Source: Bugula neritina (Eukaryota > Animalia > Bryozoa). From it: a stretch of DNA of 64,000 nucleotides. The position numbers and the translations under genes are program-made. Positions 23,001 to 32,324 of the stretch are shown piece after piece. The notes under the pieces are model-generated. The model made no database searches, had not been told where the DNA came from, and saw only the letters and a list, made by a program, of their open reading frames with translations. Each line of letters begins with the position of its first letter. The first letter of the stretch is position 1. Location of the stretch: positions 32,673,504-32,737,503 of the forward strand of contig OZ037765.1 of the NCBI GenBank assembly GCA_964035545.1, written 5' to 3'.

Positions 23001-23684
23001 TGAAGGCCGTGATTTTTAAAGCATTAAATTGAGTGTAATGTGGGGGAGATAGGACACTGGATTGCCATGGAACCATTACCAACAGTTACAGCAACATTAG
23101 ATACTAAGGCGTGTTGGAATCTGACATAATGAAAATGCTAATAAGGGTTATCACCCTTCCTCGTTAATAATAGATAAGCCCAGAGAGCATACTATTGGGT
23201 TAGACTTGAAGCCAACCATCAAACTCCAAGCCAATCAATCTTCATCAAAATGTATACATACTGCAGAATATCCATTGTTTTAAATACAAGCAATTTCAAT
23301 GCAAATCAGTATTTCTTCACGTGATGCTGCAATCATTAATGATATACACATAACCATAGCAACTGGAGTTTAGAATTCACATTAGCAAATAACGAGAGCT
23401 GGCTAAACATTCTCGAGTAGATCTTTAGAACACAGGCTTTTTTCAAGTAGCATATTTTACAGTCATTACAGCTAATAATGATTTCCATAGATCTGGGCAT
23501 ATAAAATAAAATGATTTTATCTCGAGTGCATATTTGACAGAATTCTAGCACATCAAGTAGATCTAGATAAAAGGATAACAAGAATACGTGATATTTTCTC
23601 ATGACAACAACAGCTTTAATTGTTAAACTTTTATAAAGCTAGCTACGCTGATTTTATCTGTGACATTTTCCTTCACCTGCAAAC

Positions 23685-26600
23685 ATGACCATCCCTCATG
23701 ATCCTGTACAAAGGAAACCTCCAGCTAAGAAACAAAAGTGAGTATCTAAAATAATTTAAGTTTATTTAAAATTCAAACTAGCAAAATTATGCTCAATTAT
23801 TCTTGAAAAAAATTTTCTATTCAAAAATTTAAAGCTGTATAAGCATGCTATATAAACTGATATATTTTACTACACTTTTAATTCAAAAAATATTATGAGA
23901 AAACTTTTTGAGATTATCTTTACAAAGTTAACTAAGTAGTGTATTTAAAACCAATATTTTTCAATAGCATAAATAATTTTTTTTTGAAAATAAAATTTTG
24001 TTAAGCTAGAATATCATAAGTAGTATGAAGTAAACATCTCATGCATACAGATATAGTGCATAGAGTATGTAGGGATACATTGCAGTAGCTATATCTTATA
24101 AATTCTAAAGCAATATACTGCCTATTTTAGGTTCCACGAGTACCTTGCTAAAATATGTGTGAACCACAAGTTCATGTTGTTTGTTTTGATCGTATCCGTT
24201 GGCGACGCTCTGCTTGTTGCCACTGAGCTCACCGTGGATATTCTTGCTATCAAGATTCGTAAGTAAAACATCTGCTGGTTTTATTATTTGCTAAAATATC
24301 ATTCATTAATTGCATGCAGTAAAATATTTAACCAATTGATTATGCAAATTAATTGCCAATTTTTCAATCTTCATTATAAGCTTATTGAATCAACTTTTAT
24401 TCCTTTATTTCTTAATCCCAGATTTTAATAAAATTGTGAGTGTATAAATTATTCAATTTACTCTTGTTATATTTTAAAAAATAAATTACATATATATTGA
24501 TATAATATTGAAGTAACAAGTTATATTAGACTTGGTTTAACACTCTCTGCTATTTTCAATAGAAAAAGCTGAAGTGTGTGACACTAAGGACATTCTGAAG
24601 TACTTGAAGCGAGAGCACCCTGGCGAGCTTGACGAGTTGTTTGCCAACTACACGCTGAAGGAAATACTGTACAAACTGAAGACGAGGAATGACCATCACT
24701 ACCACCACAAGAGGGACGTCTCGGCAGTTCTAAACTCCGAGCACTTCCTTGACCGTAGTAAGAGAGCCGCTCCTTCAGGGGGTAAAGGGGCGTATGAGGA
24801 GAACCCCATGTCTTCTGTTCTACTATTTGAAGTGGCCCATGCTTGCAGATATGGAAGTATTGCACTGCTGAGCTGCATGTTTCTCATTGTAAGTATAAAA
24901 TGAAGAAATCTAATAAAAGTGTGACGCTAATGTGAGCTAAGCACGCTGTTTGGGTGTTGAGCAATCAATCATGGCAAGCTGAATGTTGAGTAACCAAACA
25001 TTTTGGTCTATTCAATTATAGTTTCTTCATTTGCTTCTGTGACATTATAATGCGTGGCATTTCAACAATAGCATAATGTAGCAATATAATTTAATATAAT
25101 ATAATATAATGTGATAATATATTATAATTTATATTCCCCGATTTTGTAGAACATATTCAGAGTGTATGCTATGAGGAAAGATTTCTTCCATTCAAAACTC
25201 CAGGTAAAGATTTTATCATATATAAAACAAGCTTACTAGAATTTTATTTGCTATTTAATTAACACAAAATACAAAGGATTTTGTATATTATAATACAAAA
25301 TAAAATATTATTGCTGACTGTTTTGTAGGTACTTGATGCTATCGTGGTTATCATCTCTCTCCTGTTAGATATTAGCTTCTTACCACAAGTGTGGACATTT
25401 ACCGATGCCACCCTCACTGCTATTCCTATAATCATAGGGCTATCGTGGAGAGTTGTGAGAGTTATCAATAGTGAGTCAAGTTATTCAATCATTTAAAAAT
25501 TTTTAGTATCAATTTGAGAAACGTGAAATCATGATGTAACATTTGGATAAAAAACACTATCCTGAAGAAAAAGCTTTGATATAGCTGAAAATTAAACTGT
25601 AGATTTAGTTGATTATTGCTTATCAACACTGGTTATAAACGAATTTTAAAGGGTTTCTATTTTATTGCTTGCAAATAAATAACTCGGTTTACAGAATGAT
25701 AATATTTTAATAATTGTTTATTACTTTAGACTCTCTCATTAACTTACACGAGAAAGATAAAATCTTACTAGCTAGAGAAACCGCTTTACTCAAAGAGTCA
25801 GAAAAGAGAAACAGACACAAAAAAGTAAGTACTAGTAAATCTCAATCGTTTATAAAACATATCTATAGCTAGACTTGCTAACAAGGAAGTGTCAAAAAAA
25901 TGTGTGCACATTTTGCTATTATTTGCTTTTATTTTTACTTGTTATAAAGTTTAGTAATTGAATTTTTTTTAATTTATCTGTTTTTGCAAAAGGAAGTCTG
26001 TTGTTGATTCAATTGATTTTATGTATAGCCTGTGTTTCCTATTTTTAGCATGAAATCTACAACTTAAGAGGTCTGTGCAGAAAACTGGGAGCTGAAGAAA
26101 CCGACATTACTGCTTGTGCCAAACTGGGTAAGTTCATCTCACGTTACATAATAGGAATCCTAAAAACTTTAAAAATATTCTAATTTATTCTTCCATTTTC
26201 TATTTGCGTTTAACGGATACTTTTTGTGTAAATTCAGGCAACTGCATTGCATAATTTCTTGGCTACTTTTATTGGCAGCTGGTATTAGATGCATAAAACA
26301 AGGCATACAATAAGGAAGTAAATATTTCTTTAGATTTAATAGATGTTTGTTGCATTTATCTATTTAGGAAGTTCTTAAGTTGACTTTCTTTTCAAAGGTT
26401 CTGAATATAGCAATATGACATAATATAATATAATATAATATAATATATTCTTTATAGTAAAAACTATCAAGAAAAAAAGATTTAGTAAGATTTCATTGGC
26501 TAGTGGAATCATGTCCGTCAACTCTCTTGCCTTCCTCGGAACGCTTTCCCGAGAGAAGCAACCTCATGAGCCAAACTTGGACCGAGTGGAAAGCTTCACC

Positions 26601-27231
26601 AAGACGGATGAGACAAAAGGAGACGAAGGCTTCGATACTTTACAGCGATCCGGCGACTACGTCAGACGTAATAGGAAGGGCTCCACAACCAATAAGAAAT
26701 GGGCTCGAAACACCAGTCACCGAATGTAAGTATTTGAGTTTAATTTCTGTTGCTTGAAACCCTGAAGCCTCTGTAGCTAATTGGTTAGCACGCTTGCTTG
26801 CAAGCCGGAGGTTTGTGGTTCGAATCCCGGTGGGGCAATTTTTTTACATTTTCATTGTGTGTGAAAACTAATTCTAACTTAGAACGTGTATATTCATTTT
26901 GAGAGATGGAAATGAAAATGTAATAGCCCTAGTTTAAAACTTTGAATGCTTTAGATTAAAGTTTTATGACCTGTTTCACACACTCAGGTAGTGATTGCCC
27001 AATGCAAAGTGCAGTGAACACGCTTCACGACTGCTGCAATGTTTTTGCAGGTCAAATGTTTCCTCCATTGGGTCTATTTCGATGGCGTCCAGTTTTGATC
27101 ATGACCTAGATGAAGAGGATATTGACAACACGTCTTACGAGAGAGCGACGGAGACGTCTGATACTGACAATGATGACTCTGATGGCAGAGACAGCAGCGG
27201 CAAAAGTGATAAGGTCAGCATCAAGCTGTAA
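23685..27231 (+). CDS. HVCN1: Voltage-gated proton channel family protein (HVCN1-like, Hv3-type S4 lacking the first Arg; 9 exons, ~441 aa)
   Basis: Exons 23685-23737, 24131-24258, 24563-24888, 25150-25203, 25329-25470, 25730-25824, 26049-26127, 26458-26725, 27051-27231. All are GT-AG and phase-consistent; total 1326 nt. S1 HKFMLFVLIVSVGDALLVATELTVD keeps the D112/E119/D123 equivalents. S2-S3 reads RYGSIALLSCMFLINIFRVYAMRKDFFHSKLQVLDAIVVIISLLLD and S4 reads GLSWRVVRVIN, followed by a coiled-coil-like segment and no pore domain. The symbol denotes family, not strict orthology. Confidence 0.9.
26767..26845 (+). pseudogene. tRNA-Ala(TGC)-like pseudogene or tRNA-derived Pol III unit in Hv intron 8
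   Basis: A box TAGCTAATTGG, B box GGTTCGAATCC, TTGCA anticodon-like loop and a T7 terminator at 26839-26845. Acceptor and T stems are mismatched, so it is not a functional cloverleaf. Confidence 0.65.
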
Positions 27232-29732
27232 ACATGTGGAAATAGTTCACAATTTTTTCAACTGATAAATTTGTTTTTCAAACTTGATCTCTTGTAATTG
27301 ATTTTCACATATTAAAGATACAAGATGGTCAATTTTTGAGATGTTAAATTTGCTGCGTTTCGTTTCTTCATTGCTTATGGTGAAAAAAGTATACAACCAT
27401 ATTTTAATATTAGATAGGTCTTATTTATTTATATTTACGTCATGACCAAAAAAAATAGCAACGAAGGTAAAAAGCGATTCACCAGGCAGCTGCCCTGGAC
27501 ATTATTTTTAACTCATTATTATTCAAACTGATTATATTACAATAATGTGAATTCAATTATTTAAATATTATATAAAAAGACTTGGCCTCAAACACTGCAT
27601 AATAAATCCACTTAGCAATATTTAAATGAACTGGGTGTGTATTAGAAAATGAATATTTTGTAAGGGGATATGGTGGCACATGGTTTACCTATTCTAATAT
27701 GTACATTTAGATTATTCTGTTTTTATTAATTGGAAAAGAGGCAGTGCATTTCTAACAACAAAAATATCTATTTTTCAAAACTAATTTCTATGCTAATTAT
27801 ATTTTTTAGAGTCAAAGAAAATTCTTCTAAAATTATATGTTGGCATATAACGTAATGTGAAGAATTCACTGAGTATTGGGGATGAGAATGAATCTATCTG
27901 TCTTGTAGTACTGAGACGTGCTGCCTCCCGCTGCCCACAGCAGCAGAGCCAGGTTGAAGTGGTGCTAAACTTTTATTAGACAAGGCGTAACACTGGCTAT
28001 TGTGTAATTATGTGGAATTGTCATCTACTATGCTACACATTGAGGAATTCCATTAATCGGAATGAAAACACTGTTAGATTTATTGACAATTATGTTTCAT
28101 GTACATTTTTGCTTTTTGCTTTTCATATGCCTTGTGAATTATGTAGTATTGCTTTCAACATATTATATATTTTGTACATATCTATAATTTTTTATTGCAG
28201 CTTTTGTACGTGTTGTGACAGTCACACTGGTCATGAATTTTAATGCCAAATTTTTGTGCAATTTTTTTGTAAATACTTAAAAAATACTGCTATATACTAA
28301 CACTTTGACGATTATGGCGTAACTGCTATAATATATTTCGCTAACTCTTAAATTTTTAATAAAAATACAAGTAAAAACTTTTTTAATACAGTCAAGTCTT
28401 TGGGATGAGTTCCTGTGAAATCATTGTGCTTTTACTTACTTATATAAAGTGTCTAGCGACATCATAAACAGGAAAGGTATTTCACATATGAGGAAACAGA
28501 GTCATTAAGTCAAGATAAATAATAATTTATATTGACAAGTTTTAAATAAAAAAACTATAGTCGCAATTCTAAAATTAAGATTTATTGTATCCTTGGTACA
28601 GCTAACTGTATATAGTATGAATATACATGCAACAATATGTTAGAACGCACAGTGCATACACTACCAGGACTGTCAAATTTGTCAACCACCTTGTCATGGG
28701 TGTCATTGATTTTTATTATAACAAATTATTCCCATCTTCAACTTGCCAACTGTATTTTAGACAGCTGTTGTATGAAACATTAGCAAGTCATGAGGCATAT
28801 AATTGTTGAAACTTAGTAAGCAAATTTTTATGTTTTGTTGAGTCATTAAAGAAAAAATAAAATATAGTTTTAAATAGTTTTTGCTGTTGCTAGTTTTTTA
28901 TGAAAGAAAGTTTATTAAAGATTTTGTTAAAATTTGCAACAAGTTTGTTGTAAAAGTTTCAAAACTCAACAACATACATGCGACAGAAATAAATATTTGT
29001 GCAAATGTGTTGCATATGTTGTGTGTAGATGCAGCTACTTTATATATGGTGTTTACATTCGATCAACTTACGAACTGACTCCTAAATTAATACAATTTAC
29101 GTATTAGTTGAGTGAAATATTACACTCAGCAGAAATGCTGCAGCTGTTTTGATTTCTAGACACATTTAAATAAGAAGGCTGTCAACCGTGCAATTTGCTT
29201 AGATTCAGTTTCTATTATTAAATATTATGCGGCAATTTTCATATAATGTGTATTTAATTTCATGTTAAACTGATACAAAATGATGAGCAAACAAAATTGA
29301 GTGCTGTAATTCTGAATAATTTATAGCACTTCCTTGAAAGAGATCACGTACTCTGTCTTGAAACTATAATTTTTATAATTTGAGGATATGATATAAGTTA
29401 TGTTGCTATAAATTACATGCATGCAGCAGCTTGTGTACACCTCTTTCTAAAATTCAGACTATATCATAAATAATAGCAAACTTCTGTACAGTTTTAATTA
29501 ATATATTACAATATGGCTTTAAAAAGTAATTGGATTTAAGCATGTTGATAAGCTAACTGTGATTGGCATATTACATAACAGTTGGTGTGAAAGAATTAAG
29601 CTATAATAGATAAATCATTAATTCATACTTTACTTAAATTTTCACAAAGACCAATAACCAAAATTAGGAAAATTAACATTTATAAACACAGGTAGCAGAA
29701 AATTTCACTGACTAAGTAATCTAATGCATAAA

Positions 29733-31400: not shown

Positions 31401-32324
31401 ATGCTGTGTGAAGGTGTTACTAAAACCTGCGTAGAACCAGAGCTATCTGCTGTACATTTGCTATTAAACTGTGTCAGCATAGTGAGCAACATTGTACATC
31501 TTGTCGTTCTAAGTGGGATAGAAAAATCGAAGAAAACGAAACACTACTGGAGCATAATAAACATTGGCATTACTGATATAGCAGCAGGTGTATCTCAAAT
31601 GCTCGCAGGTAGCTGTGAAATTATTACACCAGTTTTGAGTTTGACCAATCAGCAAGCTCAGCAGTACCAGATCGTGGTGTTTATACTAGCAGCGGGTTCT
31701 TCAATGGTTCGCTTAGCTGTTCTGGCTTTGAGCAGCTATGAAAGGTACGTCTCTATTTGCCGACCCTTGCAGTCTACCTCTAACAAAGTATTGGACAATT
31801 TTGGGGTCTCCGTCATTGTAATCTGGATCATCAGCTATGGGACAGTAACTCTAACAATCCTCACAAAGGGTGACATGTACTGCTATGGTGAATTTGGAGC
31901 TTTACCCATTCAAGTCGATACTGCAACTTTGATAACATACTGCGTGATAATTCTGGCCACTTTCCTAACATGTTCAGTATGTTTGTATAAAGTTAGAGTA
32001 GAATTAAAACGGATGGCTGAAAGAAATGTTCCTGGACATGATGATGAGATTATCAAGAGATCTGCAACTTATATTATACTGATTTGCGCCCTCTTTTATT
32101 TATCCTACGTTCCCACACTGATCTCTATGCCGGGTTACAGTGTGAAGGCTTTAAGAGGGGTAACGCAAGCTTTGTCGTGGGGAGTGATGATTTATAACGC
32201 ATTTTATGGTACTCTGAACATTGTGATATACATAAGCATGACTCCAGGATACAGAGTACATATAAGGAAACTGTTCAAGTGTAGAGGCAGCCTTTCACAA
32301 GTAGCACCTGCTGCACCTGCCTAA
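31401..32324 (+). CDS. Intronless rhodopsin-like (class A) orphan GPCR, copy 1 (307 aa)
   Basis: Seven hydrophobic segments; TM1 SN, TM2 NIGITD, TM3 SYERYVSICRPL, TM6 LFYLSYVP, TM7 LNIVIY, helix 8 GYRVHIRKLFKC. The upstream MES start seen in the other copies is ATA here. Confidence 0.93.
   Translation: MLCEGVTKTCVEPELSAVHLLLNCVSIVSNIVHLVVLSGIEKSKKTKHYWSIINIGITDIAAGVSQMLAGSCEIITPVLSLTNQQAQQYQIVVFILAAGSSMVRLAVLALSSYERYVSICRPLQSTSNKVLDNFGVSVIVIWIISYGTVTLTILTKGDMYCYGEFGALPIQVDTATLITYCVIILATFLTCSVCLYKVRVELKRMAERNVPGHDDEIIKRSATYIILICALFYLSYVPTLISMPGYSVKALRGVTQALSWGVMIYNAFYGTLNIVIYISMTPGYRVHIRKLFKCRGSLSQVAPAAPA

Follow-up and report, generated by a model that had tools for sequence, protein, structure and literature searches.

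A conserved pair of convertase-type motifs in the outer loop of an Hv3-like voltage-sensor protein from Bugula neritina

Introduction

To our knowledge, Hv channels are seen as simple proteins of four helices that are not cut. Lophotrochozoan channels of the Hv2 and Hv3 types, those of bryozoans included, carry long and often His-rich loops between helices S1 and S2 (PMC10377628, PMC10911540), and a 2023 review attributes about three Hv genes to Bryozoa, among them long-loop forms that lack the S4 Pro (PMC10377628). AcHv3 of Aplysia californica, in which the S4 residue R1 is missing, combines a 299-residue His-containing S1-S2 loop with a huge C-terminus and still passes protons, along with a leak (Chaves et al. 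2023, PMC10911540). The cleavage known for human Hv1, in its sperm form, affects the cytoplasmic N-terminus and not an outer loop (cited in PMC10911540). Neither conserved convertase motifs nor cleavage of the loop are described in the Hv3-type literature consulted (PMC10911540, PMC10377628), and furin processing of Hv loops was not found in a full-text literature search, among the matches listed. Here we analysed a 64,000-nucleotide stretch of the Bugula neritina genome (the window; assembly GCA_964035545.1, contig OZ037765.1, positions 32,673,504 to 32,737,503), which contains a gene for an Hv-type protein whose S1-S2 loop carries two basic motifs of the kind recognized by furin-like proprotein convertases. 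An initial annotation of the window had set the long loop against the short one of vertebrate Hv1. The long loop itself is not a novelty, as long-loop Hv proteins of lophotrochozoans and bryozoans had already been described (PMC10377628, PMC10911540), and loop length and His content are known traits of the group. What is new is the conservation pattern of the two motifs, which form a directly testable pair.

Results

Conservation of the two basic motifs

Orthologues were collected by a full HMMER scan combined with a word search, and are short single-exon predictions from ENA metagenome assemblies and SRA runs SRR25569777/79/87; the queries of the homology searches were single exons or the public record P0001 (KAF6038149.1). 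A close set (P0022, P0023, P0024, P0003, P0004, P0005 and P0025; 49-79% identity) was distinguished from three distant sequences (P0011, P0007 and P0009), and a scan of JGI data added a ninth sequence, L015/L016. Since contigs of several relatives keep the same order of exons, with the second half of S2 (S2b), an S3-S4 exon containing SWR-x-x-R and two tail exons at 60-85% identity, we regard these sequences as orthologues from other animals, presumably bryozoans.

Across the eight close sequences, loop residues 42-83 (numbered as in Table 1) varied in both sequence and length, and K49, R50, R64, R67 and A68 were the only invariant positions among these 42 columns. Four of the five positions that had been flagged beforehand (K49, R50, R64, K66 and R67) were invariant, as compared with one of the 37 others (hypergeometric p = 2.2e-4). 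The fifth flagged column, K66, which is the P2 residue of site 2, held K or R in seven of the eight sequences. At site 1, the P4 residue was His, Tyr, Arg or Lys in all eight, with a full RHKR in P0004. Position P1' was occupied at site 1 by Asp or Ser and at site 2 by Ala, and never by Pro within the clade that keeps the sites. The two motifs can thus be written as KR↓(D/S) and R-x-K/R-R↓A, spaced by 14-17 residues, and the ninth sequence conforms with HHKR-S and RYRR-A.

The codons behind these residues differ between lineages, alternating between AAG and AAA, between AGG and AGA and, for the P4 Arg of site 2, among CGT, CGA and AGA. Such synonymous turnover argues that selection, and not recent common descent, holds the residues in place, and the overall pattern indicates that both motifs are under purifying selection. 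Their mere presence would be less telling: we estimate that one RxKR arises by chance in ~4% of loops of such a size and a KR pair in ~40%. The sites rise above chance because they are conserved. The initial annotation had named conservation of the KR and RxKR sites and of the His cluster in orthologues as a check, and within the Bugula-related clade its outcome is positive; the His/Tyr patch is largely kept, and the sites persist in the eight close sequences and the ninth but are lost in the distant ones.

Architecture of the loop

At about 85 residues, the S1-S2 loop is far longer than the segment of about 8-10 residues at the corresponding position of human Hv1. Translation of 24565-24888 on the plus strand gave a loop sequence identical to the one in the initial annotation, and the positions assigned there to the His cluster, K49-R50, the NYT sequon and RSKR (24754-24765) proved exact. 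The proximal module contains eleven residues that are invariant among the eight close sequences (Cys5, Thr7, Asp9, Leu11, Tyr13, Gly20, Leu22, Asp23, Phe26, Leu35 and Arg41), and an N-x-S/T sequon is found in seven of the eight close orthologues, in all three distant ones and in a tandem paralogue described below. The spacer between the two sites differs by one F/L exchange from P0001, the other B. neritina record. K15-R16, the third dibasic pair in this loop, was considered as a candidate site and discounted, being unconserved and placed within the helical module.

Structure prediction was poor. An AlphaFold2 model of the 173-residue public record, built from a 14-row alignment, reached a mean predicted local distance difference test score (pLDDT) of 49.9 and a predicted template modelling score (pTM) of 0.22. 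In this low-confidence model the proximal module is predicted to form short helices, and the region around the sites is unstructured (pLDDT < 50), which we treat as weak evidence.

Membership in the Hv family

In HMMER searches, the S1 exon found its best PDB matches in 5oqk, human Hv1, and 3wkv, a chimera of mouse Hv1, and chains of the same two entries were the sole PDB matches of the S3-S4 exon. The Asp of VGDALLV aligned to that of VLDALLV (human D112, the selectivity filter) and is kept at the orthologue loci; the S1 match also bears out the initial placement of the loop between S1 and S2. In the S3-S4 alignment, equivalents of D174, D185, W207, R208, R211 and N214 are in place and the H193 position is occupied by Trp. 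S4 reads L-S-W-R-V-V-R, with R205 (R1) aligned to Leu, so that the signature R-x-W-R-x-x-R is absent, as it is at every orthologue locus. The Pro directly before the S4 Trp (xPWRxxR) is likewise absent, Ser preceding the Trp. An ungapped register from S2 to the 'LDA' motif of S3, supported by identities at Tyr, Ser, Ile and Leu and by an FFH-K stretch, would place R95 at the H140 position, in agreement with the initial annotation, and Ile at the E153 position. The alignments to human Hv1 cover the flanks of this register.

The protein is a four-helix voltage sensor from which the S5-S6 pore domain is absent: S4 is followed only by a helical stretch and then by ~210 residues of tail rich in Ser and Asp, and no further hydrophobic segments occur after S4 in the RNA-supported exon chain. 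Pfam scans of single exons gave nothing significant, the exons being too short. A loop profile had no meaningful match among PDB sequences, the S2 piece by itself had none, and an ESM Atlas look-up of the loop yielded no usable match. As R1 is missing and both the S1-S2 loop and the tail are large, we classify the protein from its sequence as Hv-type, voltage-sensor-only and of the 'unconventional' Hv3-like kind. The earlier designation as a proton channel therefore holds as to family, through the S1 and S3-S4 alignments, whereas, with R1 and the E153 equivalent missing, that it is a working proton channel is something we only infer.

Gene structure and transcript support

The gene comprises 10 exons on the plus strand with a summed length of 1329 nt, coding for 442 codons and a stop at 27828-27830 (Table 1). 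The N-terminus is a short, basic, cytoplasmic segment that runs into S1. Support came from spliced RNA contigs of four runs, two of which carry the label of the same organism; the third is an oligo-dT metatranscriptome of a biofilm and the fourth a symbiont RNA-seq run. In these contigs GT..AG joints mark all nine introns, with joints at 24258>24563, 25470>25730 and 25824>26049 besides those listed in Table 1. For the exon 7-8 junction, the part of a contig that hangs loose beyond 26127 agrees with the window from 26458 onward, save for three substitutions. The RNA extends back to at least 23553 in the 5' untranslated region (UTR), and the 3' UTR runs beyond 28500.

Exon 3, which codes for the loop, is bounded at 24563 and 24888 by AG/GT signals, and each of the four runs has it spliced to both exon 2 and exon 4. 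A skipping joint (24258>25150) was absent from the contigs of the four runs, which can hide rare isoforms. The initial annotation had regarded skipping of this exon as fatal to its proposal; in these contigs it is included constitutively. The Gln codon that leads the loop is split by the preceding intron, with C at 24258 and AA at 24563-24564. In exon 3, the RNA contigs depart from the window at five listed places, all synonymous; a synonymous T>C at 24888 accounts for an apparent TG..AG joint at 24887, which we rejected as an alignment effect. Over 23553-28500, the RNA contigs of the four runs diverge from the window by ~3% in exons and by more in the 3' UTR, with several indels at ~28116-28377, which suggests that the RNA and the assembled individual belong to different lineages of the B. 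neritina species complex.

The exon-3 translation shares 99% identity with KAF6038149.1, 'hypothetical protein EB796_003544 [Bugula neritina]'. In this 173-aa record the model runs past the exon-3 donor into intronic sequence (24889-24903) and ends with ...VSIK and a stop, so that the public annotation is without the S2b-S4 part and the tail of the gene.

Table 1. Coordinates (window positions) of the exons and of the segments of the S1-S2 loop
Feature	Position	Strand	Content	Support
Exon 1	23553-23737	+	5' UTR, start codon at 23685, 17.7 codons	N-terminus of P0001 maps here; joint 23737>24131, GT..AG, in 4 runs
Exon 2	24131-24258	+	S1 helix with selectivity-filter Asp (VGDALLV), E119 and D123 equivalents	Aligned to human Hv1 5oqk; RNA joints
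Exon 3	24563-24888	+	Entire S1-S2 loop and first half of S2	Translation; RNA joints; one copy in the B. neritina genome
Exon 4	25150-25203	+	Inner half of S2 and S2-S3 turn	Joints 24888>25150, 25203>25329; conserved at orthologue loci
Exon 5	25329-25470	+	S3 (D174, D185 equivalents) and S4 (LSWRVVRVIN)	PDB matches; motif kept at all orthologue loci
Exons 6-7	25730-25824, 26049-26127	+	Post-S4 helical, probable coiled-coil segment	~80% identity in orthologues
Exons 8-10	26458-26725, 27051-27213, 27810-27830	+	Ser/Asp-rich cytoplasmic tail, stop in exon 10	Joints 26725>27051, 27213>27810
Loop-proximal module, residues 1-42	24565-24690	+	Invariant Cys5 (24577-24579); N-glycosylation sequon N28-Y-T (24646-24654)	Orthologue alignment
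His/Tyr patch HHYHH	24694-24708	+	P3-P7 of site 1	Columns 44-48 His or Tyr in most of 8 orthologues
Site 1	24709-24714	+	K49-R50, then D or S	Invariant 8/8; kept in L015/L016
Spacer between sites, candidate excised tract	24715-24753	+	10-13 residues	Low column identity
Site 2	24754-24768	+	R64-S-K-R67 then A68, furin-type R-x-K/R-R	R64, R67, A68 invariant 8/8
Linker into S2	24769-24810	+	Variable length	Orthologue indels up to 10 residues
Outer half of S2	24811-24888	+	Invariant A-C94-R95-Y-G-S; Cys94 at 24844-24846	Orthologue alignment

A tandem paralogue and other observations

A tandem paralogue (L009, G000:C1:32738552-32741695) lies ~1-4 kb past the end of the window, its loop exon spanning about L009:479-819. 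It shares the exon-3 boundaries and the module with Cys and N-x-S, and has RQKR at the position of site 1; its linker is Pro/Thr-rich (mucin-like), site 2 is absent and S4 is without Trp. The distant sequence P0009 looks like the orthologue of this paralogue in another species. Given the RQKR of the paralogue, site 1 may predate the duplication. The contigs of the P0004 orthologue contain a second partial S4-coding copy (…GLSWRIVRVIN) directly after exon 3 (L002 516-584, L003 474-542), and L002 apparently lacks a complete S3-S4 exon in the interval from exon 3 to the tail exons; the cause may be a duplication at this place, a rearrangement or an assembly error.

Within intron 8, positions 26750-26850 resemble a tRNA, with motifs like the A box and the B box (…TAGCTAATTGG…GGTTCGAATCC…). 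Contig depth there is ~6500 in run X4, and many contigs run off both sides at 26778 and 26835. ARAGORN and Rfam gave no match to this stretch. It has the appearance of a dispersed repeat and may be a short interspersed element that derives from a tRNA. Further downstream, an intronless 307-residue open reading frame at 31401-32324 (+) has the look of a seven-helix rhodopsin-type G-protein-coupled receptor, with an ERY-like motif after helix 3.

Discussion

We propose that furin-like convertases cut the lumenal S1-S2 loop, so that the sensor would mature into two chains with removal of a spacer of ~15 residues; we give this reading a probability of roughly one half. By homology to Hv1, the loop would face the lumen of the endoplasmic reticulum and Golgi and later the cell exterior. 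The conserved N-glycosylation sequon fits this predicted lumenal position, and homology likewise favours the extracellular placement made in the initial annotation. One or both motifs would then be cut in the late secretory pathway by proprotein convertases, whose P-domain (PF01483) is represented above the Pfam cut-off at at least six loci in the genome. These enzymes act on R-x-K/R-R or K-R motifs with a permissive P1' residue, and the loop offers RSKR followed by Ala and HHKR followed by Asp. As expected of a convertase substrate, the motifs are conserved in an otherwise variable segment, the exposure of which is suggested by a low-confidence model. Cutting would yield one chain with the N-terminus, S1 and the proximal module, and a second with S2-S4 and the tail. 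After trimming by carboxypeptidase, the S1 fragment would be left with a His-rich tail, and the excised piece would end in ...LDRS (15 residues) and not in ...LD as initially annotated. The two chains would be held together by helix packing and possibly, though the case is weak, by a disulfide between Cys5 and Cys94, which lie at the outer ends of the S1 and S2 helices. The effect would probably be maturation or a tuning of gating, through the freeing of S1 from S2 or the removal of the tract, and not the release of a hormone.

Several points weigh against cleavage. It is read from sequence motifs, and the topology of the loop from homology to Hv1 together with the sequon. In P0003, site 2 is RYAR and retains the minimal motif only, and a single bryozoan family may be the source of all the close orthologues. 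The distant P0011/L018 keeps KR at both places, each followed by Pro, and Pro after KR is unfavourable for convertases; P0007/L011 is without a clean site and P0009 without any. Since these distant orthologues share the architecture and lack usable sites, cleavage cannot be essential to the family; the pair of sites is particular to one clade. In the paralogue lineage Cys5 is present and Cys94 is not, which weakens the disulfide idea, and the structural model is too poor to show either the exposure of the sites or the proximity of the two Cys. Finally, the conserved basic residues could serve electrostatics near the sensor, the binding of glycans or lipids, or metal and pH sensing together with the His patch.

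This last consideration leads to an uncleaved regulatory loop, in which the His/Tyr patch and the Lys and Arg residues act as an extracellular sensor or tether for pH, Zn2+, sulfated glycans or lipid head groups, and the resemblance to convertase sites is incidental. We regard this as the main rival, possible but less likely than cleavage. The His-rich long S1-S2 loops of AcHv2 (79 residues, 14 His) and AcHv3 (299 residues, 13 His) belong to functional channels and are without reported cleavage (PMC10911540), and the distant orthologues retain the loop without cleavable sites. Moreover, both classical Zn-binding His are replaced (H140 by Arg, H193 by Trp), so an alternative sensor would make sense; the relocation of Zn2+ and pH sensing to the loop, as put forward in the initial annotation, would be plausible. 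However, the residues that are conserved fit convertase grammar, with Arg at P1 and Lys or Arg at P2 of both sites, Arg at P4 of site 2 and a basic residue or His at P4 of site 1, together with a small P1' residue (D, S or A) and no Pro there within the clade that conserves the sites. Residues between and around the sites vary, and a binding surface would normally keep more than five scattered residues.

If the loop is cut, the spacer might be an inhibitory tract of the ENaC type, whose double excision activates the channel or changes how it depends on voltage or pH. The layout of the sites, 14-17 residues apart on the outer face, is that of the furin-flanked tracts of ENaC alpha and gamma (PMC9163703; bioRxiv 10.1101/2024.02.12.579964); both sites are conserved together, and the spacer has a weak pattern of D/S, aliphatic, x, Ala, aliphatic. 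Yet the spacer is short and poorly conserved, differing (F/L) even between two B. neritina records, and its docking on the sensor is as hypothetical as the function of bryozoan Hv proteins, so that we rate this mechanism as unlikely. Equally speculative is the fuller proposal that double excision acts as an irreversible switch, which would convert an inactive or differently tuned Hv3-type sensor into a working two-chain form, with the His-rich tail of the S1 fragment as an external Zn2+ and pH sensor in place of H140 and H193. The initial annotation had also envisaged the release of a signalling peptide, which would make the channel a membrane-anchored prohormone. A dibasic site and an RxKR site do lie on either side of a short peptide, and convertases are encoded in the genome; against this, the spacer is the least conserved part of the exon, and an amidation Gly before site 2, repeated copies and a signal peptide are all absent. 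This reading we consider highly improbable. Matches returned by phmmer (P0002, P0006, P0008 and P0010) were examined as a repeated peptide module and rejected as low-complexity repetitive proteins without the conserved loop residues.

What the large outer loops of the expanded lophotrochozoan Hv families do is a question raised by specialists, and the selected pair of motifs makes it concrete. Should the cut take place, a voltage-sensor domain would be able to work as two chains in nature, and proteolytic maturation would join the modes of proton-channel regulation; were the switch true as well, this would be the first protease-matured voltage-sensor domain. Even without a cut, the conserved His and basic residues show where the functional core of this otherwise unstructured loop lies.

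Among described proteins, the B. neritina protein is most readily compared with AcHv3 and the Hv3 type, with which it shares the voltage-sensor-only build, the S1 Asp and the replacement of R1 by Leu in S4. It differs from AcHv3 in the Ser that stands in place of Pro before the S4 Trp, in its shorter loop (85 versus 299 residues) and tail (~210 versus 535 residues), and in the Ile at the E153 position. Human and mouse Hv1 (HVCN1; 5oqk, 3wkv) align with its S1, S3 and S4 exons, whereas its S1-S2 loop is ~10 times longer than that of human Hv1, from which it also departs at R205 (Leu), H140 (Arg), H193 (Trp) and E153 (Ile). Like ENaC alpha and gamma, it has two basic convertase-type sites flanking a short tract in the extracellular region of a channel. 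Unlike in ENaC, which is of an unrelated fold and family, the cut would part the helices of one voltage-sensor domain, and an inhibitory role of the tract is hypothetical. In TRPML1 (mucolipin-1), the large lumenal loop between the first two transmembrane helices (TM1-TM2) is reportedly cut, with the fragments staying associated. TRPML1 is a six-helix TRP channel that is processed by a lysosomal protease of the cathepsin type and not at a pair of convertase motifs.

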